64,000 bases of DNA from Ylistrum balloti. Its lineage: Eukaryota. This document shows, one piece after another, positions 14,801 to 40,495 of this stretch. A program made the translations under genes and the position numbers. A model generated the notes under the pieces. That model ran no database searches. It had not been told where the DNA came from and saw nothing but the letters and a program-made list of their open reading frames with translations. The stretch lies in the NCBI RefSeq assembly GCF_031769215.1, contig NW_026781866.1:62001-126000 (forward strand), given 5' to 3'. Positions within the stretch are counted from its first letter, which is position 1; the number at the start of each line of letters is the position of its first letter.

Positions 14801-17800
14801 TGATACTTCTGGGTCTAATGGACAATCCACGGACTCAATTATCGATGTTACATTTCTGAAGGCGTCTGTTGAAAAGAATAAGTATATTAATATCTTGCAT
14901 ATTAAGTCGGACAGATATGTCTAGTTCAGGAACGAAATGTTTTATGTCCTGAAATATAAAGCAAAGCATGATAAACTTCGCTGATAGCATAAACATTTTA
15001 GTTTGTTTCAATTAGATATTAGGACCTCTCATGAACGCTGTTTAAGTGCAATCACACTGAAATGTATTAACTTTGACAAAGTGATATGACATTTCATCCG
15101 GTAATTTACCACATACAATGAGTCAACTAGACCAATAATGGGATAAGAAGGATATATACTTCTGACATGTCAACACTTGGGAGCATAACCGTCCTTACTT
15201 GGACTGACGTTCACTCTTTAACACGAATCAGTGAAAAAATGTCTCGATGAAATAAGGATAAAAGATAAAGATCTTAAGCTTAGAAATTTCTTATCATTCT
15301 TAAAGCCTAGACTCGCCGGGCAAAAAACCAAAGCAAAACATGTGACGCTGCTTGCTCTTGTAAAGATGAAAAGGCTAATGGTTTTACCTGGATCTTTACC
15401 GTATTTCCTCTGTTAAGTTAAGTTTTTTCCGAATGGCATTTGAAATTTAATGACATTCCAAATTTGATGAAAGTCACACATGAAGCACAGAAGTACGATA
15501 TCACAAGCTTTTGTAACACTTGGTCAAGAATGTACGGAGAAGTCCTTGCAGTTTGTTTCCGGTTTTCATATATTTTCATATATTCTGTTGGTAGTCATTG
15601 CTAATGTTTTGTTAATTAATTGATTAAGTTACATATTGGTGAAAATTAACAATTCTGATGACGCTAAATCATTTAAATGTATCAACATGTCGACTAAAAT
15701 ATTGGTGACGTTTCTTGCGTTAATGCTATGATTAAAAATGTCAATCAATAGAAAAACTGTTACGCGAAATGCAATGTACAACCGCTTATGAACAAGGCAA
15801 GACTTCCTCAAAGCATGTGAACGCATGAAATTTGAAAAAGATACCTTCATGACATTGTTCGTCAATGCTTGCTTTATTCAACCTAAATTAATATGAAACA
15901 TTCGCGATTGCGCTGAAATGAAAATTATAAGATTGTTATGAACTTTCTAAATCGAAATCGGCTTTGGGAAAAGAATGTGGATAGAAAAGGCGTAATACTG
16001 TCCCAAATTCTAAGTCAAACTTGTGTATGAATCTAATTGTCATCTAGAGTATCAGTAATCATAAAGCAGTCGCTGACAAGATTTCAAGGTTTGACATCTA
16101 TGTGTTTAGGACGTTCCTCCTGAAAATCATGAGACCTATTTGGTACGTACAGACTGGTTCACATAACCGAGATGATGAGAGACGTCATGAAACCAAAAAC
16201 ATGGCAATACAACTGTTGTTCAAATGGAAGCTTGTATGTCTTTAACGTATGCTGTCCGTGAATCACATAGAAGATGAGTAACATCGACATACATGTTTGT
16301 ACAGTTTAATACAAGACAATTGCTAACCGTTTTAATAGATCACTTACCTAATTTCAGAAATCCGTATACGTCACTTCCTGCACATGTTGCGGGAACGCAT
16401 ACCCCCCACGTGACCTTCAAGGGTATTCCTTTTGTATCCTAATCAAAGAGAGCAAACTTCAAGAATCAACATTTAAAACTCGGACTGATGTAGGATTATA
16501 TGTCATTTAAAAGGCCAATCAAGCAAACAGTACTGTAATGTGATGCTTTAATTGGTCGATAAAAATTCTGGTGGTAGGTTACTCTTCCAGACCACCTGGT
16601 CTTACACTTATGTTGTTTCATAAGTCTCCGTGTAAATCTTTCTGTTGTTTATAATAACCCTTAATCTATTGAATTTGAGTTTGGGTTATGAGGGTATCGA
16701 CACAATGTTTCTTATTCATATCTGAGCCCCAATCAAAGTATCTTAAGGTCAAGGTGATGTCTGATGTATCACAATTGATCCTTCAGAAAAAGAAGAAATC
16801 ATAAATGCAGTGCTCTTGGGGTTAAAGATTATGCAGCACGAGACAAATGGAGTATATTTTTTCCAACCTGAACCACATTTCATGTTACATCAGTCCTAAT
16901 CTAAAATCTAAATAAAACGACTCACCACGCCTAATCCGTCGACGATACTTTCCGGAATCGGTATTCGGACACGACAGTATTTTGAGCCGACCGATCGTGG
17001 ATATCTTGGAGGAGCCCTTCGGATGTTTCCGAGAACCTCATTGGCTTTAATGTCTGAATGAATCTCCAGACACTCGTCCATGGAACCAAGGAAGTTGATG
17101 TTTCCTTTCGCAAGTCCAGCTGGTACTTTTCCGTAGGAATCTAGCACTGTAAGACGGGAACGGGGGCACAAATGTTAATTCCAGATTTTTACACTGGACA
17201 GATGGAGCTTGGCGTACAAGACCACACTTTTTAGCACACTTCTTAATAGCGTGGTGCATACTATATGTGTAACGTATTGCTAATATGACCATAACTGTTG
17301 TTTTAATACTTTTTTTATTGTTTTAAACGGAATCTGAAACATCGCAACGGTGTGTTTTATATTGTGACTTATAGACCAGGCATGATATTGGCTTCATTAA
17401 CAATGTAAAGTACAATGTAGAATTGGCGTAAATGTCTATGTTTAAAGATCCTTTAAAACATGAATAATGTCCATAATTTCAGAGACTCTATTGGAAATGA
17501 GTTATTTATCAACAATTCTCAGCTACCTTCGGCGTCACATTTGAACGTCAGGGCAACTACTCGGCCCAGATCAATTCAGACAATATTCACTTTCTATGAA
17601 AAATGCGTTGTGATTTTGGGCTCGCGGTGGTAACAGTTCACATGTAACCAGACTGACAATCGAAAGAAGGATTTTGTGGAAACTTTTATGATAACCTTAC
17701 TTATAATGCGTATAATTCGGTGCATTTTAACAGACTATGGAACTGTATGTAACTTAGATAACATCAACGTTTGATGTATGCTGATACAGTTTCCATCCAG

Positions 17801-20800
17801 TGTTTGTTATTTGAACTTGCTATCTATGCTATATGGTTGCCTGCAGGAAGGAGGGGTGGGAGAACAAACTTTTGTAACGGATTACGACCTAAAAATCTCC
17901 GCGTTGGTCCCTGAAGATTTCCCCGTTATGGCTTGTTTCATAAAATGTCTTTTGTTCCGGGGTCCACCATTGTAGTATAGATAATGAACAAAGGTATGAT
18001 TCTAACATAGTATTCTCTTTGTGGTTGTTATGCCTACATGTGACCTGTATTACAGATATATACCTCAGGTCACTTCGACCGACATCTCTTACAGAAAAAT
18101 GAAGTAAATATGAAATAGACTGTATAACGGTAACCAGGCGTCAGAGCATGTGACTATTTGATATTTCATAGTTTTCATATCTGATAGGCGATTGACGATC
18201 ATCTTGCACACACATTGCAAGCATACCATAAATTTGAAAGATATAATTGATCTAGTTACGACTTTTTATTTATCTTTAAAACAGGAATATATACTGCCTG
18301 TCTGTAATCATTGTCATCTTTAATATCTGTCGAGGTGTAAAGAGGGGGATTCAAGAAAAAAAATTGGGATAAACACGTAATTTATGTGAGGATATTTGGT
18401 TAACAGATATTTTGTGCACATTGAAATGGAAAATGATTTACCGATTATAATTACTATATTTTGCTGACTTTTCCTCACAACACTAATGTATGAACCGCGT
18501 CCGCACCCCCCCCCCCCCCCCCCCCCTCCCCTTTTTTTTCTTGTACAAACACCATTTTCCTCTCAAAAATGTCATTTCACTTGCAGACTTGTAAAAAACA
18601 TTAAAGGAAACTAGTCTTATTTATGAAATAGTTGCCGTTCTTAATCTCTTGTTGTTGGCAAGGGAGGACAGTAGCACTTGAATATCTGAAGTCTCCTTAA
18701 CAATAGTGTAATACCTCTGATAACCTTGCAGCCATTAGATATCGATATTGACCGATAATATCCACAGCGCTGTCATGCAGGCATCATTGACTCACCAAGG
18801 GTATTGAAATGCCTAGCAAACTAACACTTTTGCATAAACAGCATTAAAGTACATTCACCTTGTGTGTTCGACATTTGACCGATTTTACACAATATTACTA
18901 ACCGACATTATCATTGGTTCCGTGTTTCTAGTCCGCTTATCTCACCACATTTACATAAGTATTTGACCTGATAACATGGAACTATTTCGTCAAATAGAAT
19001 AACAGATTAGATGTTTTATTTCTAAGTTTTATTATCATTATAATTATTGTCAAAAATGTTCCAACAAGTATTGATATTGAAGAGTATTTTTTTCTTTGTA
19101 AGTTGACGGTGATCGTTATAGAGGGTAACCTGTCCTACACCGGTGTTGTCATGCACCATACGTATCGTTTGGTTAGTATACCAGTTTTGACATTGAAAGT
19201 TTCAAGAACAATTTATTTAACTGCCGTTGATGCATACAAAATGTCATCCTCATGTTTATGTATAATGCTGAAATCCTAATATACAGAATAAGTATCTTTA
19301 ACATTTGTTCAAGCGAAGAGAATATATAGTAAGCTAGGGTGAAGTTGAGAATCTGTGTTAAACAGCACGAACTATGTTATCTTAGGTGTTGCCAGGATAA
19401 AGTACCTATATGTAAATACAATACAGATATGAAAAGTCTTGAAGCCATTCGAGTTGTTTGTGTTGATGAACATTACATAATATTAGAAGTTTATATCACG
19501 CACGTCATTAACAAATTATTTACTGCTTGTTATAAATACAACGTTATTTGCTGGTTGAATGGTCTGAAATATTGATATCTTTAAAATACTTATTTAAAGG
19601 ACAGCTGTGATTAACATAATAAAACATTTTGGGAGGGAGTCAATGATCGAGGAGTTATACAAAATAACTCGCTACCGAACACAACAACATAAACAGTTTT
19701 GATGGTAACGAGGATTTGGGCCACAGCATAAGTCACACCAACGACAACTGCATTCGCAGATAATGCTGATTCAAATTGGAAATCATTGTATTCAACAGAT
19801 AATCCTATCTGTACTTATGTAGGATACCTGACCTCTGATGCACAGACATCACACTAGAGAGGCAGTCATACGTGGTACAGGTAAACAGTGCTCTAGCAGA
19901 AGACACTGCATAAGAGACCAATATAAGCAAGAAAGGAAGGGACAGCCTTGTCATTCATTATTGACAACATCAACGTTTCAAATTTTAAACATGTGTGACG
20001 TCAGGTTTGCTGTTTGATTACCATTGTATTCCTAACATGAAGCCACACCTATGTATTAATTTCAGTAAACAAAATTGACAATTTTGAAAGTTCAGAGGCC
20101 GTGTCGGCCATCTTGGATTTTGAAATAATGTCCCCATTGAATCTTGACGTTGTTATCAGTATTCACATTTCTATGTTATATCCTATTATCGTTTAGCCAA
20201 TCAAAGCCTCTGGCGGCCATGGTTGATGTCTGATCGAAAACGGAATAACGAAAGAACAATTGCTCCAAACTTTATAACAAACTTTTATTTTACAAAAATT
20301 GCGAAGCAAGTTTTTTCCAACTTATATCAATCACTCTTGTTGGCTCGGATGACAGCGCGCGATGGGTCTTATTGTGGGGGGAAACCGGAGTACCCGGGGA
20401 AAACCCACGTGGTCGGGCAGGTGACCCCCATGCCTTTTCACATCCATTCAAAATCAAAATCAAAATTCTTCAAACTTACGAAGCAAACACTAAGGATACC
20501 ACGTGCGAAGAAAAAAAGTGAAAATTTTCACACATACGACCAGTCATGAAGTAGTGACACGGAAAGGTTAATTCGCCAACATTTACGCTATTATATCCCC
20601 ATTCCAGACGTCTGCTGGTCGATTAGTAGCCATTTTATTCACTACCACCTGTATGATTGAAAGAGACAGTATTGCAAAGCATCTAAACGACTGAGATGTT
20701 TCATCTATGGTTCATTACTGAAAATGCTAGACGCTTATCAGCTACTTTTACTTAAATAGCTGTTACGTAACGTATTATGTATAAGTTTATCTAATCATGT

Positions 20801-23800
20801 GACTGCTCCCCCGATTAGATTTCGACTTTTCGTTTGACCACTATGGATTTTCCTAAATCACTGACGAGTTTTAGAAGGATGAAACAGCTGTGTGATGCAA
20901 TTTTGAAAAGGTGCCATTCTTTTGTGTTTCTTTTTGTACAATCTTAGAAAATTATTCCAGATACCGGAGCAATTACAGGTTAACTGTTAAGTGCCGTAGC
21001 TGTATAGTTTTAAACAAAGAGTAGTGCCATGACTCCCGATATAACGTAAACTGTGGAAAGCATGATGAAAGATAATCACAGAAGTTGTTTTGGAAATTTA
21101 ATAAGACAAAGTATACAGTGACTATAGCTGTTTCGCCTTCAAAACAAGTCTTTATTCATAAGGGTGATAAAGAAAATCAAACGTTACCTTATTTTACTTA
21201 ACTTAACTGAAAGTAACTTTTAAATTCTTCCGATCATTGTTCTGATTTTCAACAGGATGATTTTCTAAACTTGTGAAGTGTATCCATATATTCTGAAACG
21301 TAATGCAATATGAATTTCAGCTTACAGCACTTGGACTAAAGTCCACCAGCAGAGTATATCCCCTACATTTTTAAAAGGATATGATTTCACAAAAGACATC
21401 AATCAAAAACTTTAAAGTCATCGTCATTGAAAATTGTATCGATAAAATTTAATTTCATGGATCAAGGTGTGTATGTAGAACTCATCGGATTTACCTTCGA
21501 ACGTCTCTAAAATCAGTAATGTTTTTTTATGTATTACACTCGAAAATCACGCGCTAACCACGATACCCTGCTTATTATGTTTTATCATGACAGGATATGT
21601 AAAAGGAAAAATCATCAGTTCACGTGTTACTGATAAGTATGATATTCAAGGAATCTGTGTGGACTTTGCCCTGTGAGAATTTTGGCGTGATATCTATTAC
21701 GTCATTCACCGAGTTATCTAACACTGTAGGTGGTGCTCAGGTTACCCTAACATTACTTAGATCATAGATAAGGTCTAATCACGCCTTAATTCATTGTACG
21801 TGCTCTTAGGCACACATCATTTGGATATACTTGTACATATTTTCATTATCCACTTCAACTGGAAGTTCAATATTGCTATCCACGGCATATATAGATTACA
21901 GTTTATAACACAGCACTGCAATCACACATAAACTAAACATACAGGCATGATCAAATAGCGGTATAATATATCAAAATTGCGAATCTTGCTTTATATCAAT
22001 TGTTGGAAATAGATATTTACGAATCCTTACACATTAAGTTTATAACTTAAGTGTCATTGTGTCGATTAGAAATCGTTTAACGCGTAACACACTGCGTGAA
22101 CTCAATCAGATAACGATTTAACTATCTCTTGATTAAAATAATGCGTGTTTGATATTTTAAAAAATGCTGCGGTTTTAATGGTGGGAATTAGATCTTCCAA
22201 CGTCATTAAAGAAAATGAATTGTAGACGTCAACGGAATTTTAATGTGATACTAAAATTCAGTTTGAAGCTACCTTAACGAAGGTATTTACAATCAATACA
22301 CAAGTGAACGAAACCTTTCAATTAAAAGTTACAAGGAGGTACAGTACAGACATAATACGAGGGGCAACGATCAGAATGATATCGAAACGGAGAAAAGAAC
22401 ACAAGGAGACTCGTTGAACATAAATTAATAAAACACTGACTGCTTGATAAAACCAGCAAATGTTCCATATTCACGTCCCCCAAACGGAGTTTCTTTTTTT
22501 GTTATTCTTCTTCTAATCTTCTGTCGCGTATTGTCGGACGCATCTCTCGAAAACCATAGGTCCGATTCAAGCGAAACTTTACATAGATGGCAATTTGTAG
22601 TTGTGCTTGCGGCTATTCTTGTTTGTCGATGGTACATCAAATATTTCGGCCAGACCCTCTGATTGGTTAAAATGTAGCAGACTATATCTCAATAAGCTCT
22701 TGGTGATATTGAAATGAAAATAAGTATGAATACTGACAACCATGTAAAGATATCTTTGAGATATGTTTTTCTAAAATCCAAGTAGTCCACCACAAAAATA
22801 AGTGAAATCAAGTAAAGTGTAGATAGCCTAAGCTGTTGAGTAGAATTGTTTCCTACTTCAATTACCAATACTTTGCGATAGCAGGAATAGTTTTGAGGAA
22901 TTCTGTAACGGTCCACTTCGCGTGTACTTTTAGGTCACGAGGTTTGCGGTAACCTTAAAGTCATATGTTAGTTCATTTGAATACAGACACAGTTCAAAGT
23001 ATACTATGTGTTTTACGTTCTCCCAAAATTATCAGATGTATGAAAATAACCAGCTATTGAACTTTGGGGCTGGTGCACCTCACTTCTATATTTCGACTTT
23101 TCATTCGAGCACTTTCAATTTTTCTCAGTCACCAGCATCAATGACGAATTCTAGAAGGATTATTTAACTCTATAATGCAGTTTTTGCAGGAGTATCCGCG
23201 CAAATCTTTATTTTGTTCACATTTTACCGTTGGTTTATGGAACTCTAGTTTGGATTTTGATTATGTCGACAGGTTGGTATTTCTGAACTTTTTCAAGAAA
23301 AACATTCCTTATTCTAACACAAAAAAATGTCATTAGACTATGTAGACCTCAGCAAGATAAAAACATCTCCTGTAAAAGATATTATCATTTTATTTCCATA
23401 TAATGGAATTTCAATAAAAAAAATCCTATTGTATTCAACATATAGTAAATGGGATTTATTCTGTCTATTTTTTCTTACTTATTAGAAAATGAAGAGGCAG
23501 TGATTTGAAAACAACGAATAAAAGAATGACCATATTATTGGTTGGTGTTATTATTCAATATTTTTTCTTGTTATGATTTGGATCCCATAATTATTACAGA
23601 AAATATGAATATTACTATAAGCGTGCATTTTCTATCGATGATACCGTGGAAGCTGTATAAAATTCTGTCTGCATGGTATCGATGTCAATTAAGAGGACCT
23701 TTAAATGTTTATTTGAATGCACCGATATTCGCAATAACTTCGTTCATTTATATTATTATTATTGTGGCACATTCACAATTACAGCAAGTTCAATTTTAAC

Positions 23801-25113
23801 AGACATTTCAGCTCCTAAATTCCATCCAACTTTTAAAAATATGATAAAACTTACCTGAATATATACGGGTAACGAGTATTGGGTCTTATAATTAACATCA
23901 ATAATTTGGTACATGATCAATGGCTACATGCTATCAAACGTTAATAAAACACCCCATACTCACTTTTTATTGCCCAGACTCTTTCCGCTTTCGCTGCATC
24001 CAGGAAATCAATCGTGTCCTCATAACAATTTGCGCTGATCTTCCCCGCCGATTGATCGTACGGCAACGCGATACGCGCGCTAACAGACCCCAAAACGCGT
24101 TCTATCAAAGAACGTATGTCCATACTCTGTAGAACATTTAAATAGGTACTAACGGGATTACTTATTATGTTAGTTCCATTCTTCAGTTGACCAGTTGTAT
24201 TATATGTTTTGATAAATTCTGCCTCCAAAATTTTGAAGAGGGTCTGGAGTGCTGGATTTTGCTGAACTCTGACAAAAGTGCCAAATGCAGTAACAAGTCC
24301 TGCATAAATAAACTCTGTATCCCCATTGTACAAGGAATCAAGGACGGGTTTACTGACGTTGTAGGATCTCAATATTAGTCTTTGTACATTCGTATTCATG
24401 ACAACAGACCTAACAATTGGTACCGTATTATTGCTTTCTGTCAGAAATCCTGTACCCTCTTTGGCAATACGTTGAGGTAGATCTGATTTTTGAAATCCTT
24501 GGCTAAATTCATCAATGGCTACATCTACGACAGCCTGGAAGGTTGGAGAAGAAACACTGTATGCAGTTATCTCAAGAGCTTTGTTCAAAACCATGATGAA
24601 GAGACTGGAATCATTTTCATGGCGATACATTTCTATTAGGGGTTTGGATACGGTGATACTTCGAGTAAGCGCGCCAACGAAGTTAAACTTTGAAGCAATC
24701 TGCTGTATGTCTGTATCTGAGATAGGTTGAGATGGATCAATAGTGACGTTCGAATGTTGCAATGCTTTTCCAAACTCATCAACAATGACCCCAGCTATTC
24801 CTTGAAAAACAGAGTTTCTGAGCAAGTCTGGCATTGATGTCAAGACGTACGTCTCTATGGCGTTGGGCAGTCCTGACGTCATCGAAGTATTTCCAGTAAA
24901 AAGGTGTTGTCGCAAGTCATTAGCAGCCATCAGCGATTCGTACACATCGTGTGAAAAGGATTCATTCTCAGTGAAATATTGGAAAAGGAATTGGGCTTTT
25001 TCTGTGTCATTCATGTTCTGCCCAGTACCGACGGAATCAATCATCCGTGGATATGATATCAGCATGCTGAACACAAGAATTGTGGCTACAAAACTATTTT
25101 TACTAATCTCCAT
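5865..25113 (-). CDS. nrf-6: NRF-6-like / O-acyltransferase-like (NRF domain + Acyltransferase_3) multi-pass membrane protein, paralog A, 15 exons, ~1078 aa
   Basis: Hand-assembled exons (minus strand): 25113-23964, 17146-16926, 16438-16348, 14865-14775, 13954-13584, 12728-12540, 12231-12138, 11422-11309, 10757-10592, 10208-10129, 8642-8544, 8066-7937, 7683-7491, 6742-6600, 5969-5865. All introns are GT-AG and phases are consistent; total 3237 nt ending in TAG. Family motifs: WAIKMLDSYGK..GNINFLGSMDEC, WGVCVPATC, CIHGIRFFSITWIMLGH, SVDTFYMISG, HRIWRLTP, WWTNLLYINN, CMAWTWFLANDMQFY, YITPWCR, LSRLSYAAYLIHP, FEAPFMALEK. Confidence 0.93.
8269..8410. repeat. 28-bp minisatellite, 5 copies (CGTCTGGTGGCTACAACAACCATTTTTA), in gene A intron 11
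   Basis: Units start at 8273, 8301, 8329, 8357 and 8385; one substitution (ggTtac) in copy 2. Confidence 0.95.
11540..11682 (-). mobile_element. tRNA-derived SINE remnant in gene A intron 7
   Basis: Minus strand: A-box-like TGGCGCAATGG, degenerate B-box GGTTAGATTACC, then a body ending ACTCCAGTTTCC. The body matches 20380-20426 at 35/47 nt. Confidence 0.6.
20090..20240. repeat. Possible Helentron/DINE-like non-autonomous element remnant
   Basis: Two related units (GGCCATCTTGGATTT; AGCCAATCAAAGCCTCTGGCGGCCATGG) resemble internal repeats of such elements as I recall them; termini not identified. Confidence 0.3.
20341..20445 (-). mobile_element. SINE body fragment (GGAAACCGGAGTACCCGG motif) in gene A intron 1
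   Basis: Same body as the 11.6-kb SINE; the tRNA head is not visible. Confidence 0.55.
23964..25113 (-). CDS. Gene A first coding exon: signal peptide + ~330-aa uncharacterised repeat domain + first helix/Cys of the NRF domain
   Basis: 390-aa ORF in the track. Hydrophobic N-terminus FVATILVFSMLI; donor AAA A|GTGAGT at 23964/23963; splices in phase 1 to TG CTA GAT, giving the family-typical WAIK-M-LDS. Confidence 0.9.
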
Positions 25114-27405
25114 TGTGTTATAAATCTAAACAATACTTTCAGAAAACATTCAACAATTATGAATTAATTCGACAGTCATCAAATAAAATTTCTTACATAT
25201 GTGAATGTATTTGCATCATCATGTAACTTTTTAAGGGTCCATTACACGAAGTGTTAGTGTCAAATTTGCAGCAGTTTGAGTGAGAAGTTGGACATTGTTC
25301 ATTATCAATATAGCTTCATATCATGGGGAAACAAACCTCTTCAAGCATGCGTTGTTAAATACACTGACAATCCTACTAAAGACGAAAGAGAACACAAAAA
25401 CGATGTGCCGTTGTCTAATGAAGCAGTCACTTATTCCTCCGACGTAAAATGTTGTTGGAACGATCAAGAAATGCAACGTCCCTGTACTCCCTGTCCTTAT
25501 AAACAATCTTGTGGCGATCAGCTGTTAGCTGTCAAACAACCCGCGTATTAGTAAATACCGAGGCTCCAAACGGGCTTCGATTTCATGTAAAATAAGGTAG
25601 TCACCATGTGCATGTGACAAAGATGAAAGTATCCTGGAGATAGAAGTTGTTATAATATAATAATAATATTCAAAATACTAGTAGTCGCTTCAATGTCGTC
25701 AAATGAAAATAATAATATCAATATTGATACGTGGTATTATTACTTCCGTAATACGTTTCCTTATGTAGATATCACATAGCAGGGAACTGGCAGTCGATAC
25801 TATACGGGCAATAGAATTGATAAAAACGTGAAACTTCGTGACCTTTGCTGACCTGAGTTGAGTGCAATATGTAGTCCAAGGGCACTATGTTCCAGATTCG
25901 TACTCGTTTACAGAGATGTTCGAATACAGAAATTCATATCAAGCTATAAAATATTCATCATCTTAAAGAATAGGTCTTAATATTCCTCTTGTAACTGGCT
26001 CAAATGGAAGATGAATTGGAAGACCGGACGTTATTTGATCTGAAAAAAAATAATAAACTTTTTTCTTTCCATCAAACAGTAGTGCTGAGTGAGATCGAAG
26101 ATCCTCGTTACAAACAAGATCGAGTGGCGACCTACGTATATGGCTTTATCGCGAAAAGGTAGGAAGGATAATAAAGAAAAAATACCGAACCCCAGTGCTT
26201 TGATAAAAGGACCAGGTAAATCGTCTCAGCTGTAAAAATGATATCTATCAAAAGTAGATTTTATGAATATTTTAACCTAGTTGTCGGCTATACTGTGCAC
26301 TTATTAATTTTCGTGGTCAATCTTAATCCACGGATCTATATGTTCATGCAATGAGAACCAAACATGAACTTGAGTACAAATCGATTCAGTAAAATTACGA
26401 GCCAACGAAAATGTATATTTTACAAAACTTGAGCCCCACTGAAATATTTTACATCTACCCTATAACTGTGATATTTAAAATATACCTGATATTCAATGTA
26501 TTTTCAGAAAGGATCATCGCAAAAATAATTGTTCATGAAAAATGTGAATATCATGTTTGGAAGAATTGCCTCTATTAGTAACCATAAGGAAGAGAGTTTA
26601 AGCTATAGATGTGTACCATTTGTGGTCATATTATCTTTATCCTGGCCTACGTACTTGTAATATTTGTTAATTTGTAACATATTGATATGATAAGCGGATC
26701 GCCTGCTTTACCCTATAGAGCCCCACTAGACAACATGCCGCTGATAAGAGACGAACTAATAAAATGTAAGCATAGATTCAAACAGTGGACTTTGTCCCGT
26801 TGTGTCATCCTCACTGGACACACCTGCACGACGCAAAAATTTGAACACTCACCTAGACACGTGGTTTGCCCACACGCAAGGTGTGGACTTTGTTACATGA
26901 AAAACATCGAAGTATTTCGTGTGTACAAGTTACAATATCTTGATTCATTTGCGATTGATATTAAAAAACAGCACAATTCGAAATTTTAAGTTTCTGTAAA
27001 GTAATTCTAGTTTATTTCTTAAGCTTTTACGTGATTTAATTTTTTTTTTTTTGAGATTCTTTATCTTACTTTAATTTTATTTGCAGATATGTTTTTAACG
27101 ATATAACGTGAATTCGATGTACATGCTTGTTTAACGTTTTCAGATGGAGAATAAAATGACTTTCGGTTTCTATACGTACTAGTGATAACCAAGTTAGCAG
27201 CTTAATGAATGGTTAGATTTGGTCTGAAAATTTCATTTATACAATGTTCAGTATGTTTACTACTATCTGCTCGATATAGATCAGAGCGGGGTAATAGTTC
27301 GTGGCGTTGAAACTAAAGTTTATATGATGCTGCCTTTAACTAGGGCAAAATATGACCAAAGGACGATTTACACGCAGACTTCTGCAAAGTACATGGAGAA
27401 AAAAT

Positions 27406-27459
27406 CCAGGTGTTTTGGAAGAGAAGTATATTCTGTTTCATTGACGACACCCGCCATGT
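27406..27459 (-). repeat. Second copy of the same dispersed repeat (intergenic)
   Basis: CCAGGTGTTTTGGAAGAGAAG..GACGACACCCGCCATGT is a degenerate reverse complement of 57911-57965. Confidence 0.5.
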
Positions 27460-30400
27460 AAATCTTGGTCAATCCGAGTAAGTGATGTCACGTTCTCACA
27501 TGAGAACAAGGCATACAACAATGAAACGAACAGACAAACTAACAAGTATCGATGTTCATATCGCACAAAGAAACAGACTATTTCATCAATGTGATCATTA
27601 TAACGTACCGTAATGCTTCCTCATGATAAAATGTTACCTCAAAACTGATCGCAATGCCTCAAGCTAATTTCACATTTTTCAATTCCAAATTGCAAAGCCA
27701 TGACGGGATACAAATGATCAGATGATAATATGATTCATTGTTTCCAACGTAAATAATGATTGCATAACCAGGTTTCCGAGCAGTATTCCCATACGACAGC
27801 AAACAATCAAGCATTCATTTGCAATGGGAAAATGTGCTTTATTGTCAGATTTTTCACACAAGTACAGACTATATATTAACACTAAGGTAGTCATGACGTT
27901 ATAATGACTCCATAATCATATGCCTATGACATTGAACTAATCAAAAACTGTTGTTTTAGGTAACATGCTTAGTTCAACTGAATTATCGTTAATATACACC
28001 AGTAATATTCTTAAATAGATAGTTTTTCCTAGATTCGATAGTCTTATAATAGCACCACAAAAGAGAAAGATTGGGTTATTTCTAAATTTCCATCAAGTCG
28101 TTTTCGCTCATTTAATAATTGGAATCACGAAAACACAACCTCATTTTTGGCATATAGTTAAGTATCCGACCCTATGTGCAAAGCTTTGGGTCCCATCGTC
28201 TAGTCAACCGGATTCCATAAAAATGACACTATTTGCATAACGCTCCTTATTGCGATATTGTTACCACTGGATCATCCTTGTCACTATAATATGAAATGTC
28301 TGATATGGGTGTCCAGCTGTAACATTCAGCATTATATTTCATTAGGGCACCTCTATAAAGTCGGCCTCAATTCCGCACTCTGACACCTTAATAATGTGCT
28401 CCTCTGAAAATTTAAAACAAATCCTTTTTTTTCTAATATGATTTATTGAAAGGTTGCATATTAGAAAAAAAAGTTTAAAAGAAAGAAATTAAAATGTTTT
28501 AGCGATGCTTTTTCCAGTAAAAGCGTCAGATTATATATCACATTTTTTGAAATATTATCCTAATTTTCTCTTGAAAAACAGACATCTTTATTGCAACCAT
28601 TTTTAAATTAGGTTACGTCTTTCATTATCAGGCACAGTTATGTCACTTCTATATTAAGAAAAAAACTTATGTGAATATTCTAAATAAAACAGTAGTCCAT
28701 ATACGACATTTTTCACAACATCATAAAAATCACCCGTTTAGAGTCTGAAATTAATTTTATAATGAATTTTGGATTCCTTCCGGTCAATCATCAAAAGAAT
28801 ACATCCTATAATGATAGTAGCTTTTAAAAGGATAATAAGTAATACAAACCATGAACGAAATCGAATCCAAGACATAAACTTATCTGAAAGCTGCCTTTAA
28901 CAAATCACAGTATTTGTTAAAAAGCCTCCATTTTGATACCACTTCATCTGTAGAAACAAGACTTAAAACGAATTGTTTATTGCACTGTTGCATAATTATT
29001 ATTGGAACTTTTGATAAAAAGGTTATTTGCTATAACGTTCGATTCAACTTCTTAATCGGAAGAGCCTTTATACAATGAAGGCCTGGTCTTAATCTATGGT
29101 ATCGAAATTATTGTGATGTCCAGGCATGTTTTTAAGTGTTCAGGAGACCTAAATGAATTAGTGATACCAACGTGTAAATGTTGTGTAAAAGTACTTTTAT
29201 TAGCTAGTAGTAAATGTAATCTTTTGGCTTGAACTTGAATGTTATGCCTATTCTTATCGCCTAACAGTTTGCATTTTTAACTTGAAGGTTTGTCTTTAAT
29301 AAGATGTTGTGATTCGAACGAAACGACTCCGATGAAACATGTTATATCCGGACAAAATTGTTCGGGTCAGTCTTGACGGTGCCATTTGATGCATCATATC
29401 AGTACATGTACATATAAATAGATAAAGACATAAGCTATAGTGTTTTAATTAACACGATCAATGTTCTTGAGATATGATAACATTTAGATTATCAATATGC
29501 ATGTTTTGTGTGTACATTTGAATAGATAAGAGATTAGAACAACTATATATCACCTGACCTTACATAACTTGCCTGGCCTTATCAAGTAACCTTGAACTTG
29601 ATTTCACCCTGCTGACCAGTATGTCGTGAACAACTATACATTATCACTTTCATCAAGCATGACCATATGGATGACCATGAATGTTCCAAAAAAAGCTATG
29701 TTTGGAAGTCAGTTCAATCTAATCGCTGCATATTGATACGTACTTAACAAAAGACACACTATCTGAATGATGACTTATTTCCTACCTGAGCATTATCTCA
29801 TAAGTATTTATTTGACTATGCTATTTCTAACCAAAAAATGACATTTAAATCTTTTTTCAAGGCCGAAGGAACACGTGTTATCTCTTAACGAGATTTATCC
29901 ACTTCAGAAGACTCATCTTAAATAACGATATTCCTTGACCTCAGATGATCCTTGATCGCCACCTAATATCCCACGATATCAATGTCCCGGTAAATGCTTA
30001 CCAGCGAAATGTCAATAAATATGACAGGATGTTTAATGTACGTGTTTGCGATAGTCGAGGCATTGATAATCAATAACAAATATAAGCTTAATATGCCCAT
30101 ATGTATTGAAATATACAGACTGTACACAATCTTGGTTATTATTCCAATTAAAGTTTTATTTTTTTTTTAATTTGCATGCACTCATTGACTCATTAACTAT
30201 TCACAAAAATGAGAACGAGACACTATCGTACTCCTGTTTCCTGTCTTAGTCTGATTTCAACAAAATCAATGAGAAGAACTCTTTGGGAATCCAGAAAATA
30301 ATTTCAGTCCAAATTCAATGTCCTAAATCCATACACAACAGTAGCCCCAGATAAGACAGCTTTCAAACGAAATGAATTCAGGGAGCCAATGGGCCATAAG

Positions 30401-32930
30401 GTGTGCTCAACCGGGAAAATCTGAAGACATCTTGATATCGTTCATCTAGTGCGACATGGAGAATAGATAAATAGGTGTAGAACGAAGAACAATGTTTTGT
30501 CCTGTCTACAAGTAGAATCGTACATAAATGTCATGGGAGTGATTGTATATTCCTTTTAGATGGAAAGATGAGGAATATATAAGACATTAATTTCATCCTA
30601 GCGTGTGCTCTATGTTTCTTTTAACCAAATATCTCTTATTTAGTCGCTACGTTATAATACAATGTATCTCCGTGTATTTTCTAAAGGCGCTCCTCACGCG
30701 CAAGTGGTTTGAGGACGATTTCTGCCTGCGCTTTTTTCTGCCACAGATCTATTGCTAGAGTATTTTTTATTGATTCTACTTTCCAGGCAGCTTTGCGCTA
30801 TATCTTTCGTTTTCAAAGCATACTAAAACTTTGATAATTCTCTTAGTAAGTTAGATAGTATCATTTGGCGTATCGTTGATACCTAGTGATTCAAAGCTCA
30901 GAATTCTTTGTCTTGGTTGGAAATCAGTTCATTTTATATAGGTCAGCTTATTTTCTCCAATGACAGACCTCCGACAATATCCCAATTACATTCGGTTTCT
31001 TTGAGCATCTCCATGTTTTCATCATCATTGCCTGAATTAACATAAGTAACAGAAAGCTCTGAGTCATTATTTCAAATACTGGTGTCAGCATCTATTCGTA
31101 GACCCGCAATCTCCTACTTTGTGTTTACAAAAGCAATTAGAGCACACTTTTGAGATGATTTCAGTCCGACTATTAACATCAGTTACTTTCGTGTAGTTAC
31201 CGGGTGGGAGATACACGTGGTTAATATATCATAAAATCGTGGGATGCTTCTTTCCATAATGATACTTGATTAATATTTTCCAGTTTCAGATTTAATTTGT
31301 CGCGTGAACTGCAATTGTTTACTTGTTCCTGCTTTTCTGAAAGTAAGAATTACTTTACAAATGCTGACTACATCGTGTTTAATGGAACATTCTTTTTTTC
31401 GACCGTGATACCGGCGGATTCGAGTACATTTATTTGGAAACATGATTTCTTATCTCCTTGGAGTTTTTAAGAGTTACTGGAACCAGTACGCTCACAAGGG
31501 ATTTGAGTCAGTGAATAAAAAACTCTCTGTTTTATCCTCAAACGTGTTCTGCTCCAGGAGAGATTTTTCTTCGGGAAATCTCGGTAGTGTTAGCTAACGG
31601 AGTTTGTGTGACGACATACTTATAAATCGTGTTGATATGGTAAATATATTTTAGGCTTTTCACTAAGACACAAGGCTCAATTCCTGCAATAAGAAAATGC
31701 GAACACCTCAGCATAATCATCATCCAAACGCAAATTAAATTTTTGTTTGAAGTCATCGCCGATACGAAACAAATATAGTTATAGTAATTAAGCCTTAGGC
31801 CTACCATTTATAAAGACTCTGGTGTGTCTCTGCCGGGAGCAACATCACTAAACTACCAGGGGCGAAAGTTCAACTGAAGACTAAAAGTGAGGCAGTGTAT
31901 AGTCATGGAAGATGTATGGAAATATTTGAAAATGTAAAGACCCGAATTTAGTCGCCAATTTATTTAAGTAAATTCAGGATCTACATTTCTGAAATCACAG
32001 CAACTTGTCATTCCCATAGGCAGAAAGGAAATCATAAAATGTTCTAAATATTATTATATTAATTACCGGCTATACAAGTCTAGTGCTTGATCACTTCCGG
32101 AATCTCAAACGACAGAGGAGAATCTAGTTGGTTACCGAATATAGCGCTTGCTGTATTTATCTAAACTTGAGAATTTGTCCTCCAGCAGAACGAAAACCGT
32201 TTATTAGAAATCATCCACCCGTCGTCAGTCAAGAACTACATGATCCTGTGAATGTTAATGTCAACTTTTATAGTCTCTGATGACGGAATTTATTGATCTC
32301 TTTGTTTTTAGGTCGAGTACTATATAGGAACAGTGGAATGGTTCACTGTTCAGAAGTCTTTACATGTGTTGCATTTACCTCTCCATCCACCTGGCCGTTG
32401 TGGATCAGTTTGAATTGAATCGTTTAGTTGATAGGTATAATTGTTTACAGAGAAAGTCTTGAGAATGGTATATGTTATTTACAATTATTTCAATAGTTAC
32501 TGTTTGAAAAATAGAACGAAAAATAAATACATTCTGATGAAAACTTACCAATTTATTTATTTTTTATGTTTTGTCCTATTCCCCCTTCATTCTATATCCT
32601 GTAAATAGCAAAACATATCTGTTCATGTCAAATTGAGCATAATGATAATATTTTGATCATATATTGTTGTGTATGAATGAATATGACATACATGTACTTT
32701 ATGCGCTCTTATTCCGATAAACACCACGTACTCGAAACAAAATAATTATATATTCCTGCTAACAGAGAATTTATCATTGTATGTTGTCATTGCTGTACAA
32801 ACGTATATAAAGAAAACAACAAATAAAATGGGATTCGACAAATGAGTTTTTTAGTGTCTTCTCTGAATGTTTTGTACTTTTAGATTTCAGGATTTCAATA
32901 CGCATAATCCAACAGCAATAGATAGTTAGC

Positions 32931-33470
32931 ATTATCATTACATTCTTAACGGCCCGTCAACTCATAAAAGTTCATTAGGGCCATCAAACAGTAAAACACA
33001 CAGTGATCCAAAAAGGAAATAACATTAAACAAATAAAAAGGTAAAAGACAAATTTTTAAAATCTTAAATGTTATGTTAACACAAAAGATTAAAATGCTAC
33101 GTCATAGTCTATTATATAGACCAACATCTTCCAGGTAATGTAGAAATTTACAAATCACACGTTTCAGAAAGGAATTTTAGACATGTAATGTTACGATAAA
33201 AGCGTTCTCGAGTAGACAGATGGTTACTGCAGTCCAATAAAAATGTTTAACGGTGAATGGCTCATCACATCCTATGCACCAAGGATTATCTTCGCCTTTC
33301 AACATATATGAATGTGTAAGGTATGACCCATACAAATACGGGCAAGGACAACTTCTTCTCGGTGGTTGTCTCTATAGCCTGGAGATCATTCACTGATAAC
33401 AGGTTAAACGGAGTGCAATTTGTTATTGGTATAGGTATTCCAATCCTCCTTCCACTGACAATGGCAATGA
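32931..33470 (-). mobile_element. 5'-truncated 3' end of the same I-group LINE family (intergenic)
   Basis: Long recognisable match to 51575-52085 (CATTCTTAACGGCCCGTCAA...GGAGTGCAATTTGTTATTGGT). Encodes the remnant CIGCDEPFTVKHFLLDC zinc motif and a degenerate TAA tail. Confidence 0.9.
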
Positions 33471-36400
33471 AGATTATTTTATTAATTGTAGAAATTTTAT
33501 TCACAATTGTAGAATCTTTTTATATAGAAACCGCACCACAGTTGTGTTGTTAAATATGTTTATTAATTGGGTTCAGTTGACAAATTCTTATGAACCCTAA
33601 TATCATTTACCTATATGTCATTCTTATAGTCTTTCATACACCGACACATCAAAATGTTAACTTCATATGTGACTGTGACCAACAAAGAAATTTACATAAA
33701 ATTAGTCAAGAAGGTAATCTTAACTATTACAACAGAATGTTCAAGAAGAATGTTATGAATAAAATAATTCAAAGTACATAAGACATCAGCAGTAAACGAC
33801 CAGATGAAATACTTTTCTTTTCAAATATGCTTGATTGATATAATTTGCAGTCATAAATTTAAACCAAAACAACGTTACAGATATACAAAGTGTACTAAAA
33901 GATAGTACTAAACATATATTCATAAAAACCTTACAAGTGTTATATGATTCCTCTATGACAACAAATCATAAAAAACCCTTCATTCATGCGTCTGTTTGGA
34001 TGGCTCCACCAATAGAAGGCTCTTGTACAGAAGACCTTTACAAGATTCCATTATAAGAGGTAAGAGTTCTTGCAAAGTTGCCATCCACGTGATGGAGAGG
34101 CCTTTATCGTCCTGTCTCACAGGCAGACCTGTAGGAAGGTTGTTTCCCCTATTAAATAGTCTCGCCTTCACGTTCCTCTCCAGCAACTGCTGGCCTTGCA
34201 TTCACCATCACCTAAATGAATAGTTAACTTTATATTGCAGCTATGAATAGTAGTGGGAAAATATGCGCATTTGATGTCTTAGACAATTCAAATGAAATGA
34301 CGTTCATCAAATGTGCTAGTTTAAATAGTTAAATAGTTTTGATGTGTACATGATATATGGATAGTTTTTTTCCTTGAAGTTCTACTTTATATACTGATTT
34401 GAAAGTAGCTAAGCCAACATTCCATGGTTATGTACAGATCAGTTCGCTTGTGTATTACCTTCAGGTTTCTAAGGATCATTCTGTTAGTATACTGTCACAT
34501 TTGACTTGATATGAACCATACACATATTTCTGACTTGAATGGAATGCTTTAACATTATGTCATTTGAATCTGGACACTTGGAAACAAATATATGTGATTA
34601 TATGAGGTATGAATGCAGTTGACATGCATATTTATTTGATTTCAACTGATTGTCACTGTAAACATTTTTATCATATTTCTATAATTCGCGGTTTGAGATG
34701 AAACTTGTCTTCGACAACACTGAATTAAAAAATACAACTCTGGAAACCATGATATGTAACTCGAATAAGATATTTTTGTAGTGATCATTATCTACCTTTA
34801 GGAAGCTTTGTGACTGATTTAACATTATTATGAAATTTTGTGTTATTTCCACGTATTGGTACAGAACTAGAATATAAATTCATAATCAAACTGTAACCTT
34901 TTATGGTTCACATTTCATTGCGCTGCTGATCAAGCATTCACTACACAAATGTTTATTATTATTAACATACAATGTTGCTCTCTCATCCAACCAGTCATAT
35001 CACTTTATAATGTCGCAGTTTCTGTTCATTTTAATTCTATACACACATTTGTATGCTTTGTTATTTATTGTGGTCCAATTTTTATTTGACCGAGTTGTGT
35101 TAAATATATGATAGATATACAACTGAGAACCACACAAATATAACGGTTACAGTACATGGGAGTTAACTCTATTCTTAGGTATGGTGAACTCTCCAGGAAG
35201 GAGATTAAAAACGTTATGAATATATCTGCTGAAAACACGTGCTATTTATTTTCATTGCCAACCCTCGGAACACCCTAACAGAAATGTTGATTTTCAGTCC
35301 ACCCGTAGTAAGTTCGCCTGGCCGAACGGTAAAAATTATGCTGTGGTGCTGTGTCCGACATGTTCAAGCCGTATGACGTCAATATTATACTTAAATTCGT
35401 ATACTGATCTTAAAACAAAATATGGTAATATGATACGCACGGTCTGATTTTATGAATAAACTTCAACCAGTCTTCACAGAACTGAGTAATGCAGACCCAT
35501 TGTCCCTTTTCCGGTTATTTTGTATATGCTTTCTTGGTGCTAAAATCTAGCATCTTCTAAATCATCTAGAATAACAGTAAAACTCAGTTGAAAAATAGAC
35601 ATATTACTGAACATCAAAGTCTGTGTTTTTCTATGCAAGTCCTGTCAGTAAAGACAGATTTGTATTGTGCAGATAAAACTATATGGATGTCAAGATATAT
35701 TGTTATGTATTGTTTATGCATCAAATATGGAATGATTACTTTTGAATTTGAATTGATAAATATCGAAAGAAAACAAATGGATTTGAAGAAAACACGTTGT
35801 GCGGTTCTGGCGTGGACGATATCGACTTAGAACTGACATAACGATATATAAGAGTATAACTTAGTATACTTCCTAATTAAGTCATCAATATATAGGTTGT
35901 ACACCTGTAAATCAATCAGATACAGACAGAAAAGTTATGTACACTCGTAATTAAAGTATTTTGTTTATAGATTTCCACACTTGATCTGTTTTAGTATACG
36001 GACACACATTATATCTACACATATATAAACATTAAATGTGCGTCTCTTTTTGTCTCTGGAATGAATAATCTAAAATCTCATACAAAAAAGAGAAATTTCG
36101 TTTTCATAACCTCTGTATTTCATTGTTTACTGTTTTGTAAGCAAAACATGTGTAATCAGTGTTGTGTTTGTTACAGGAGAGACATAGCCGGTACGGACCG
36201 GACCTGTCATAGATATATTAATATCATATACAGGTAAATTTTATTGCCCTTGGCAAAACCACTGTGCGACTATATACAATAAGACTAATTAATGCAATGC
36301 AAGTATTATTTCGATAACTGTCGAATTGAAAATAACTTTTATAATCACCGTTTAATTTTAATATTCCTGTGATCGCTATTTAGTCATAAGTACTATTTTC

Positions 36401-39115
36401 ATCGCCGGTGACCTTTAATTTTCAATCCTTTATGTAAGCCAACCAACGCTTACAAAATGAACAGCCTCAAACCTGTCACGCAAGGTTAAATTTTAAGAGC
36501 GGTTTCTTTAATAGAAATAGGCACTTGTTGGCCATTTCAGTCTCAAATTCAAACCATCGATTAATCATTTCCCTTCTTTGATAAACTCTCAAAAACGTGA
36601 AGGCATACAGATATAGACCATGTGGAAATTGCGTTTGATTTCCTTGAACAATCAACCATGTACGCCTCAAGGCAATGTTTCAAAATTACATTTATGACTC
36701 AAATTTATCCCTCTAGCACTTTCAATACAATAGTAGTAACAATCATTCTAGGAAATAGACGCCAGCATTTGAACACATTTTTTATCTGACCAGCGACTCT
36801 CTTAGACGGCCGTAATAAGGGACCTGGGAGACCAGTATCGAAATAAAACCCTCCCAAATTCCATTACACAAAACAATGCGCATTAAAAATATATTCAAGG
36901 GCCAAAGACGATGGAATATTAACTATCTAAAGTGGACAGGAGAGACGTAACTTAAACAACTTAAGAGTTGTGGGTTGTGTAATTGCAGTGAATATATGAT
37001 TCCTATCTAATATCTAATAACCTAAACATATTTGACAAGCATATTGCATAGGAATTATATGTATAATATAATATATCTGATGTTTGTAACACCACCTGAA
37101 TCTCTCGTGACAATGTTTTATCGTTTGATCAAAATAGCAGAGTTCAATGGTTTTCCGACGATAGTAAATCACTTGAATCTGTGTATAAACAAACAAAATA
37201 GACCATATTCTAATTCTAAGAAATATCCTAATCAAACCATAACGAGATCATTTAAGTATAATTTGGTAAAAAAAATGGAGATCTAATTATGTTTTTGATC
37301 TATTGAAATACCGAAATAAACCGAGGAACTAAGTTTACTTTTATTTACATATTTCAGATCGAACTTAAGAATTGTGTTACGTTACTACATAACACAAGAG
37401 TATACCTTATACATTCATATTTATATGGTATTGGTCATGGTTCATCACAGTCGTAATAAAACGTATGTGGTTATTAATCCGAGAATGAAAAATGACAAGC
37501 GCGATTCATTATTTGTCTATACTAATATATCTAATACTGTGTTTTGCATTGAGAGGTAAGACTTGTTTGTCTTTGTTATGTTCAATGAATTGTGTTTTCA
37601 TCACCTAACTTATTTTCTAGCAATTTTTCATAGCAATCTTTGAACCTCAAACTTAAATCATTTGACGTATCTTTTACCTGCACATTGTTATGGAAAAGGG
37701 GAAAATAATAATATGATACTTAAAGCTCAGAATAAAGCATATCATGTCAATATTAATGAATTGTTTTATAAGGAATAATTGCATACCGTTTACAGGTGTG
37801 AACAACATTTTTCAATGATAGTTATATAGTATCATGACAAGCCTAATGGCGTCTGATAACACTCCACACGTTTTAATGGCAAAACTAATATCTTGGAGCA
37901 ACTTTAGATAAGTCTCATGTATGTAATGTAATGTAAAGAAACAACCTTTTAACATTTTGACGAGTGGTCAAATTGAGCATGTAATCCACTACGTTGTTGC
38001 AAAAGGTTTATATCGCAATAATAAACCCCGCGGTTGTACTTGAAAATGGGCTTCGTCAAAATTAACTTAATCCAATCACACACCGTGATATATGTGAGCG
38101 GAATATAGGTAGAATGAAACATATCAATCTTTAGATCAACTAAATAATTATTTATGTCAGTATTGCATCATATTGAATTATGCATGCAAAAGGCAATGAC
38201 AGGGCACGGTAAACAAAAGGGAGACCGTCATCGAAACTGCTAGACGTATACATATATGTGTATATTGTATGGTGACAAATATGCTGCCAGGATGTAGATG
38301 CACTGTGTATACAAAGAAAATATCACTTCGTTCGAACCCCCTTTCACCACTCGTTGGACTTCAACGCCGCATATATACTGGCTATGCTATCCTTCACGAC
38401 CAGATTTTCTTTTGTTGTGTAGACGAGTAAAAAATATCTTTAAACAGATATTTGAAACATATATTTTAGCAAATTTTACTTTTCATAATTTTGTCAATTT
38501 ACATCGTATTGCTATTATTCTTTTAGACACATTTCCATGTTATTCCATTGTCTTAAAAGTGCTAAGCGTTACGTTCTCGCACACTTCATCAATGTATATA
38601 AAATTAATTACAACTATGCTGATACCGACCATATATCACAGACCAGATACAACCGAACCTCGCTATCTCGAACTTATATAACTCGAAGTGATCTTTCAAA
38701 TGGAAAAAAGTGGCAAGTGGGTAATTTCATCTTATCAGACTGTGTTGAAAGGACAGTGTAAAATGAATGCATATAATGAAAAAAACTAAGGATTTTTTTC
38801 ATAATCGCAAACTACTTTATGTTTGATACAGAAAGTAGGAAACCTTTACTTTATTGTGAATTAACGGTAGTTTTGATGCTTTGATTTATAGGTACACCAT
38901 AATATTTTCATTACTTCGCGAGATGTGAGAGAAGTGAATCAAACACCTACCAATTAAGTTTTGTAACACTATGAGTTCAATCGTCCATGGTTATCATAAT
39001 TTGATTTATCATAATTAATTTTAAACGTTTGAACTGATTGCAATAATACTGAATTCGAACAAGCCTGTACACCTTTACTGACCGAGTTGAACTTTTACGG
39101 TTATCAATGTTATTG

Positions 39116-39176
39116 CCGGAAGCCAATTACGCCATTGGTTGGATGCTTAATTGACGAACCGTCGTACGCTATATAT
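39116..39176 (+). promoter_or_regulatory. Candidate proximal promoter of gene B (CCGGAAG, CCAAT, inverted CCAAT, TATATA)
   Basis: CCGGAAG 39116-39122, CCAAT 39123-39127, ATTGG 39134-39138 and TATATAT 39170-39176, ~175 nt upstream of the ATG. Competing evidence: strong splice acceptors at 39258-59 and 39292-93. Confidence 0.3.
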
Positions 39177-39348: not shown

Positions 39349-40495
39349 ATGGAATACACTCCTCAATATGTCCTTGCCTTTATGATTTCGCTTGGTATAT
39401 TTTCAACAACGGCACAGAATTCTGTTTCAACCATTACCAGCCAGAACTTAACCAACTCGGAAAAAGCTACCTTCTTAGCAGATTATTTCCTGCAGCATGA
39501 GCTAGAATCTCACTATGTGTACGAGTCTGTTATGGCTTCTAGAGATATGATGAATCAAATTTCGTCCGGAAACACATCGGCATCCCAAGAACTCCTGGAT
39601 GCCATAAAATCGTATGTTCTTACATCTCTACCAGGTTTCCTCAGAAACCCGATTGTTCAGGGTATATTTGAAGTCATTGCCGATGAGTTGGGAATAGCAT
39701 TGCAAAACACCGATCTTAACATCATTTCATCTCAATTATTCTCTGATGAGGATATACAAAAATTATGCTCCGAATTCAACTATGTAAGAACACTGACGCG
39801 AAGTATCACAATCGCCAAGCCTCTTATTGAAAGGTATCGACAAGAAAATGATTCTACTGTCTTCATCATACTACTGAACAAGGCAATCGAGATGGCCGCT
39901 TACACGATTTCTACTCCAACATTTCAAACTGTCATGGAAATTGTGGTAGATGAACTTAGCCAAGGATTTCTTAAATCTGGTCTTCCAGAACGTATAGATG
40001 AAGAAGGAACCGGGTTTCTGAATGACGAAAAGAACACGTTATCTATTGTCAAAACTATAATAGAGAGTTCGAATATGGAGAGGCTAATGACGAGGTCTTA
40101 CATTGCTAGTAAACCAGTCCTCGATTTACTTTACAAAGGGGATACGCTATTTCTTTTCGCCACATTCATGACCGCTACTGGAGCTTCACAAAATCCAGCG
40201 TATAACTATATGTTCGAAGTATTTGAAACAGATTTTATAAAGACATACAACAAACATGTCAATTCTGCTGGAGATGTTTCCTCACTGATCAATGATCCAC
40301 TTAATAGCTATATAAATGTTATAGAAAAGATGAATGTTCTCGGTACATTTTCACCAATGTTTCGGGCTGCAAGTGCGCGTAATCTATTGCCTTACAATAG
40401 TTCGGCCGAGGAAGACAAGATCAGTGATATTTGTTACGAGGATACCATTCATTTCTTGGATGAAGCAAAAAATGAGAAGGCATGGGCATTGAAAA
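39349..40495 (+). CDS. Gene B first coding exon: signal peptide + ~330-aa uncharacterised repeat domain + first helix/Cys of the NRF domain
   Basis: 403-aa ORF in the track; true ATG probably at 39349 (MEYTPQYVLAFMISLGIFSTTAQ). Aligns without gaps to gene A exon 1 over the first ~280 residues; donor AAA A|GTAAGT at 40495/40496. Confidence 0.9.

Follow-up and report, generated by a model that had tools for sequence, protein, structure and literature searches.

The stretch of DNA analysed here (the window) covers 64,000 nucleotides of the genome of the scallop Ylistrum balloti (RefSeq assembly GCF_031769215.1, contig NW_026781866.1, positions 62,001 to 126,000 of the forward strand); positions are given in window coordinates unless the contig is named. 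Runs of N are absent from the window. It harbours two genes, A and B, which are complete paralogues arranged head-to-head at a distance of 14 kb. Their predicted products share (i) a signal-peptide-like N-terminus, (ii) a repeat-built domain of ~330 residues, (iii) an NRF domain (PF20146) and (iv) an Acyl_transf_3 (AT3) membrane domain (PF01757). The repeat domain, which was first noticed in gene A at positions 24085-24816 (residues 100-343), is the subject of the present analysis. Its anatomy can be given with high confidence: it represents an unannotated, all-α ectodomain of ~330 residues, composed of a lead-in of ~65 residues and three units of ~90 residues, and is located ahead of the NRF domain.

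Gene A is an intact gene of 15 exons which, judged from its sequence, encodes a predicted NRF/AT3 membrane acyltransferase. Fifteen colinear tblastn segments running from 25113 down to 5868 correspond to residues 1-1088 of the 1092-residue homologue P0027. The reading frame of exon 1 extends from the ATG at 25113 to 23964 (383 codons plus one base; open reading frame (ORF) listed as 23941-25113, minus strand); the exon closes in codon phase 1 and the donor GTGAGT adjoins it. Positions 25113-23965 were covered in tblastn with P0027 as well as with P0015. Exon 2 (16917-17144, minus strand) attains 35.6 bits on PF20146 (cut-off 27; model positions 23-67), and a scan of the genome with the NRF model yielded 36.1 bits at the same exon. 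Comparison with P0029 and P0032, in which the equivalent CYED motif marks model position 1, assigns model positions 1-21 to the end of exon 1. In case of the AT3 domain, single exons of gene A reach at best 14.6 bits on PF01757, the exons being too short for the Pfam model. Exons 6-15 are colinear with, and 46-85 % identical to, P0015, P0027 and P0032, which themselves attain 80-94 bits on this model (94 bits for P0032, a protein of the orthologue group). The HGIR-x10-H motif of the first transmembrane helix (TMH1) is found at about 12600 (HGIRFFSITWIMLGH, in the exon at 12502-12729), and the Arg and His of TMH1 are likewise present in gene B, P0032, P0015 and P0010. Both residues are described as conserved or essential in AT3 enzymes (PMC12423673).

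Splicing of exon 1 to exon 2 of gene A at the predicted junction 23964->17146 would read WAIK-M-LDSYGK. The equivalent stretch is WALKMLDSYGK in P0003, which is encoded by the transcript contig L003, and WALKMVDSFGK in the RefSeq protein P0029. Contig L003 (3612 nucleotides, SRR19746224) stems from a relative and carries an unbroken ORF of 1078 residues comprising the repeat domain, NRF and AT3; the tree places this protein with gene A. Since the homologous gene of Y. balloti has 14 introns, L003 must represent a spliced transcript. One unbroken exon encodes both the repeat domain and NRF model positions 1-21, and thus the fusion postulated by the first-pass annotation is written in the DNA, with the junction matching both P0003/L003 and RefSeq models. 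Contigs of the only public sequencing run containing the stretch (X1) are continuous through intron 1. Compared to the window, X1 differs at four sites of exon 1 (24142, 24720, 24755 and 24813), one difference being synonymous (Y324) and three non-synonymous (S132P, H120R and S101P); a further differing site is 23953 in the intron, and 13 differences were counted over the 2.8 kb of intron compared. P101 is the commonest residue in its alignment column and R120 is common to several family members. These differences are probably allelic variants.

The repetitive nature of the domain was initially deduced from anchor residues, all of which are present at the proposed places of gene A, i.e., FQ at residues 103 and 192 with LQ at 289, DEF at 112 and 201 with AEF at 298, and RS..SKP at 151 and 249. 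Smith-Waterman alignment of the exon-1 protein with itself gave a best off-diagonal score of 75, compared to 35.4 ± 6.1 (maximum 59) for 60 shuffles. The similarity between units 1 and 2 is already significant in this single sequence (score 57 vs. 25 ± 4, z = 8, reached by 0 of 300 shuffles), while unit 3 is not significant from the gene A sequence alone (z about 0-1.3 against shuffles). For profile comparison with hhalign, an alignment of 23 N-terminal domains (A3) was cut into units. All three pairs then proved to be significant: U1-U2 (98.2 %, E 4e-14 over 81 columns, score 74.6), U2-U3 (96.5 %, E 1e-9, score 51.5) and U1-U3 (93.6 %, E 2e-7, score 40.1), with column-shuffled profiles scoring about 10 on average and at most 18.2, 14.8 and 14.7, respectively. 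The assumption of an approximately threefold helical repeat therefore holds for the relatedness of all three units by family profile and has to be amended with respect to their completeness, since only two copies are full and the third is truncated. The latter lacks the KP..D/DS tail and covers profile positions 2-68 of 92.

A unit profile was derived from 45 units of 15 proteins aligned in a single register (A4). Across the 648-Mb genome it retrieves exactly six matches, divided equally between genes A and B. The unit consensus reads P..N..FQ......E(F/L)..(A/G)(F/Y) ... N.T..IV..VL...N..RL..RS....KP.ID..R..DS; in unit 1, this corresponds to the helix FQ...DEF, a linker and the tail RS..SKP.IE...NDS. 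Successive units are significantly similar and in register across homologues in a generic tandem-repeat test, and the repeat is also revealed by offset tblastn matches between species. No tandem repeat was detected at the DNA level between 17000 and 41500, arguing for an old duplication of the units. Comparison of the unit with the NRF, middle and AT3 regions of the same protein by hhalign revealed no relation (E 0.63). The lead-in (residues 25-92) is not significantly similar to the units by hhalign (E 0.056-0.15; score 13.0 vs. 8.4 ± 1.6 for shuffles). It shares register with the second half of the unit in two of these comparisons (E 0.056-0.073) and may, as judged from this register, derive from the second half of a unit by degeneration; at these E-values a fourth or half repeat is not claimed. 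One homologue, P0007 (L010:286-1281, a Logan contig from SRR15505939), contains an insertion of 59 residues with a further FQ...DEL helix, indicating that the repeat number varies. Its ORF ends after unit 2, and the remainder of the contig is devoid of homologous sequence; P0007 could be a pseudogene or possess an additional intron.

The domain had been described as unrecognised, which agrees with the database searches. Pfam yielded no family in gene A at E up to 10, and across 23 family members no Pfam family was common to more than two (best E 0.006). Sequence searches of the PDB with domain and unit profiles revealed no relative, and no fold match was obtained by Foldseek or VIA-align. The only PDB sequence matches, to the designed helical repeat proteins 5cwf and 5cwb (E 1.3e-3 to 0.13), were rejected as compositional. 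These designs resemble the scallop domain in being built from repeated helix-turn-helix elements, but the matches span 30-40 residues of idealised helices, whereas the scallop unit comprises ~90 residues with 4-5 helices. A feature search of the ESM Atlas gave a best score of 0.76, which is below the useful level. AlphaFold2 modelling from an alignment of four sequences was too poor to use (mean predicted local distance difference test score (pLDDT) of 47); with the 23 sequences of A3, ~18 helices and no strands were predicted (mean pLDDT 66, predicted template modelling score (pTM) 0.36). Accordingly, the predicted helices appear believable and their packing does not. The all-helical model agrees with the expected secondary structure, and its lack of a fold match is a weak test at this pTM. 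The same holds for any resemblance to apolipoproteins, saposins or lipid-transfer proteins, none of which was found in the PDB sequence, Foldseek and VIA-align searches, the fold part of this result being weakened by the pTM of 0.36.

Several features of the exon-1 protein point to a luminal or extracellular location of the domain. The sole 19-residue window with a Kyte-Doolittle value above 1.2 covers residues 7-25 (maximum 1.59), and besides this signal-peptide-like stretch no segment of transmembrane strength is present in the exon-1 protein. Nine N-x-S/T sequons (residues 35, 50, 75, 122, 167, 228, 252, 305 and 312) and the absence of Cys ahead of the NRF part had been noted for gene A; both were reproduced, the single Cys (C363) lying within NRF. 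Across the family, the repeat domain contains 0-2 Cys and 4-12 sequons, and sequon N228-N-T within unit 2 is kept in 22 of 22 family members. Saposins need six conserved Cys. The proposed amphipathic character of the helices is weakly supported: hydrophobic moments exceed those of their own shuffles (p < 0.05) in 3 of 14 predicted helices. The residues L, V, I and F together make up about 30 % of the exon-1 protein.

Table 1. Features of genes A and B in the analysed window of Ylistrum balloti
Feature	Position in window	Strand	Remarks
Gene A, exon 1	23964..25113	minus	signal peptide, N-terminal repeat domain and ~21 first NRF residues; 1150 bases
Signal-peptide-like N-terminus (gene A residues 1 to ~24)	25042..25113	minus	hydropathy scan
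Helical lead-in, conserved (gene A residues 25-92)	24838..25041	minus	alignment A3
Repeat unit 1, full (gene A)	24568..24831	minus	unit profile A4, E 1.9e-24, positions 1-91 (contig 86568-86831)
Repeat unit 2, full (gene A)	24277..24561	minus	unit profile A4, E 3.4e-28, positions 2-91 (contig 86277-86561)
Repeat unit 3, truncated copy (gene A)	24076..24270	minus	unit profile A4, E 6.7e-14, positions 2-68/92 (contig 86076-86270)
S-A-R..LP linker (residues 347-357, conserved) and NRF start (358-383, with C363)	23965..24075	minus	alignment A3
Gene A, intron 1	17147..23963	minus	6.8 kb; GT...AG ends, acceptor CAG/TG at 17146
Gene A, exon 2, NRF domain	16917..17146 (3' end approximate)	minus	Pfam PF20146
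Gene A, exons 3-15: remaining NRF, middle region, Acyl_transf_3 membrane domain	5868..16438	minus	13 colinear tblastn segments
Gene B, exon 1	39349..40494	plus	build as gene A; 100 % identical to residues 1-382 of P0029
Gene B, repeat units	39631-39897, 39898-40182, 40186-40377	plus	unit profile A4

Gene B corresponds to an existing RefSeq model (P0029, 'O-acyltransferase like protein-like [Ylistrum balloti]'), and the enzyme family is already known. The set of tblastn segments obtained for this gene with full-length scallop proteins as queries extends from 39349 to ~63990 on the plus strand (Table 1). Position and phase of intron 1 are identical in both genes, with a length of 6.8 kb in gene A vs. 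~0.63 kb in gene B (40495-41125). The interval between the two genes (25114-39348, 14.2 kb) contains a single ORF of at least 120 amino acids (127 amino acids at 38298-38681) and may hold shared or divergent regulatory sequence.

A hidden Markov model built from four of the domains was compared with 1.84 billion representative proteins and yielded 14 matches at E ≤ 0.001. Named carriers are the Pectinidae Argopecten irradians, Mizuhopecten yessoensis, Pecten maximus and Y. balloti as well as the mussel Mytilus coruscus, in agreement with the lineage-specific nature attributed to the domain by the first-pass annotation. No oyster, gastropod or other named taxon is among the matches, an outcome that depends on the gene models of the library. 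This distribution suggests absence of the repeat domain outside scallops and mussels and, as far as could be seen, its confinement to pteriomorph bivalves. Word searches retrieved two proteins for exon 1 and, for the domain of the Mytilus protein (domain at residues 34-346, NRF at 357-472), nothing beyond that protein. Neither Pfam nor the source names of any match provide a name for the domain. The short homologues, 248-392 residues in length, represent exon-1 ORFs located on contigs of 1-3 kb. On three of these short contigs (L004, L007 and L009) the ORF runs through the W..K motif, followed by the same phase-1 GTAAGT donor in the two where it was read (L004 and L007). Stand-alone copies of the domain were not seen among the matches.

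The genome of Y. balloti harbours at least 21 NRF loci, i.e., the NRF/AT3 family is expanded in this scallop, and only genes A and B possess the repeat domain. Some of the NRF loci are clustered, with four matches on contig C698 (530180-792464) and three on C249 (1793042-2254950); some of these matches are interrupted by stop codons, which may reflect introns or decayed copies. Nearly all NRF matches in the genome start at model position 19-22, suggesting that an intron after the ~20 first NRF residues is shared across the paralogues. The repeat domain would have grown within an ancestral first exon, behind the signal peptide and ahead of the start of NRF.

Phylogenetic analysis resolves an A group and a B group, each comprising several scallop genera, and places Mytilus in a separate clade. 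Hence, the duplication predates the split of the sampled genera (Ylistrum, Mizuhopecten and Argopecten). Protein P0029 (gene B) shares 57-64 % identity with its B orthologues in the N-terminal domain, compared to 50-59 % in NRF and 53-67 % in AT3; among these orthologues the N-terminal domain is therefore as conserved as the catalytic one. Against the A group, identity amounts to 38-46 % in the N-terminal domain vs. 56-58 % in NRF and 53-55 % in AT3, and against Mytilus to 22 %, 38 % and 33 %, respectively. These values indicate that the N-terminal domain is folded and under purifying selection and that it diverges faster than the core once paralogues have separated. Such a pattern would be expected of a part that determines specificity.

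The C. elegans proteins NRF-6 and NDG-4, Drosophila Drop-dead (DRD) and mammalian OACYL possess the same core (PF20146 plus PF01757) as predicted for the scallop genes, in the shared order of signal peptide, Cys-containing NRF and multi-pass Acyl_transf_3 with the TMH1 Arg and His. The proteins of genes A and B differ from NRF-6, DRD and OACYL in ~330 additional repeat residues between signal peptide and NRF, which are also missing from at least 19 other NRF loci of the same genome. Typical members of the NRF/AT3 family comprise ~700-830 residues, while the repeat-bearing proteins have ~1060-1090. The joining of a transmembrane acyltransferase to a soluble domain on the acceptor side is a trait that the scallop genes have in common with OafB and OatA (AT3-SGNH) and with human HGSNAT and CASD1. 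In contrast to SGNH-type domains, the scallop domain is all-α, N-terminal and repeat-built, carries no SGNH or catalytic motif and displays no similarity to them in sequence or fold.

AT3 proteins form a pore by which acyl-CoA (coenzyme A) from the cytosolic side reaches the extracytosolic acceptor, and in many of them the transfer also involves a soluble domain fused on the acceptor side, e.g., SGNH (OafB/OatA) or a luminal domain (HGSNAT); in fusions of this type, the soluble domain helps to hand the acyl group to the acceptor (PMC12423673). The N-terminal domain fused to animal AT3 proteins is NRF (PMC12423673). By analogy, the AT3 core of the scallop enzymes would pass an acyl group from acyl-CoA through the pore to an acceptor across the membrane. 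The repeat domain is expected on the side of this acceptor, beside NRF, because of the signal peptide, the conserved sequons and the lack of a membrane helix. There it could recruit or position the acceptor or a partner protein and thereby confer specificity on the subfamily, in a role, though not a fold, comparable to the one that SGNH has in OafB/OatA or that the luminal domain has in HGSNAT; a part in the hand-off itself may be envisaged from the same comparison. Taken as a whole, the described anatomy combined with an accessory role on the acceptor side is the statement towards which we lean slightly. The more specific proposal, an extracytoplasmic accessory module that gives an acyltransferase subfamily its acceptor specificity, is tentative. 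With still more reserve, one may speculate that the repeat arose in exon 1 of one NRF/AT3 gene in the common ancestor of scallops and mussels as an acceptor-recognition domain that retargeted the enzyme to an extracellular substrate peculiar to bivalves, e.g., a polymer of the mucus, byssus or shell matrix.

Several points weigh against an acceptor-side specificity module. The functional role of the domain is one that we infer throughout, and its position beside NRF on the acceptor side relies on a topology transferred from the family. A relaxation of constraint after duplication could equally account for the faster divergence between paralogues. Furthermore, a pTM of 0.36 lends little confidence to the way in which the units pack or to any groove or pocket in the model. 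Finally, the sole public run containing the stretch is DNA, so that the splice junction of gene A rests on homology. The last point may also raise the suspicion of an artefact, in which the gene model would be wrongly joined, the ORF intronic or the exon that of a decaying pseudogene. This explanation is essentially excluded, since the 383-codon frame is open and continuous into the start of NRF, exon 1 shares 50-56 % identity with proteins from RefSeq and from transcripts in four scallop genera, independent bivalve contigs show the same phase-1 donor behind the W..K motif and the transcript contig L003 of a relative carries all domains.

Among the alternatives that accept the gene as it stands, a lipid- or lipoprotein-binding module would hold a lipid acceptor or cargo by apolipoprotein-like amphipathic helices. 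Such a module would fit the all-α, Cys-free build of the domain, the share of L, V, I and F in exon 1 and the action of NDG-4 and NRF-6 in distributing lipophilic factors and yolk (PMC3919970). It is considered unlikely in view of the few helices more amphipathic than their shuffles and of the searches that retrieved no apolipoprotein, saposin or lipid-transfer protein; moreover, the conserved punctuation by Pro, Gly and Asp-Ser would suit a fixed bundle of short helices rather than long exchangeable ones. Somewhat less probable still is a passive glycosylated stalk, spacer or oligomerisation part which, free of any ligand, keeps NRF off the membrane or pairs two enzymes. The motif positions retained from scallops to mussels and an orthologue conservation equal to that of the catalytic domain speak against this explanation, as spacers usually drift fast, even though the repeat architecture, the variable copy number (extra FQ...DEL unit of P0007), the heavy glycosylation predicted from the sequons and the low-confidence packing between units (pTM 0.36) would all be compatible with it. 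That the domain belongs to a helical family described before, from which it has strongly diverged, appears doubtful as well; this possibility gains from the moderate quality of the structure model, which gives the negative fold searches little weight, and it concerns the identity of the domain, not its role.

Mutants in NRF-6, NDG-4 and Drop-dead display striking phenotypes, and we know of no substrate identified for any animal NRF/AT3 protein. As a conserved soluble ectodomain, the repeat domain could be expressed alone for binding screens and structural work, offering a possible handle on the substrates of NRF/AT3 enzymes; if it does serve in acceptor recognition, it would be the first tool with which an acceptor of this family could be retrieved directly. 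The new domain family (A3, A4) could enter domain databases and would explain ~330 blank residues in the scallop and mussel proteins retrieved. It elaborates a known enzyme family within one lineage rather than constituting a new kind of system, and overturns no expectations. At the same time, it provides a clean case in which a repeat domain grew within a first exon, behind the signal peptide and ahead of an old domain.

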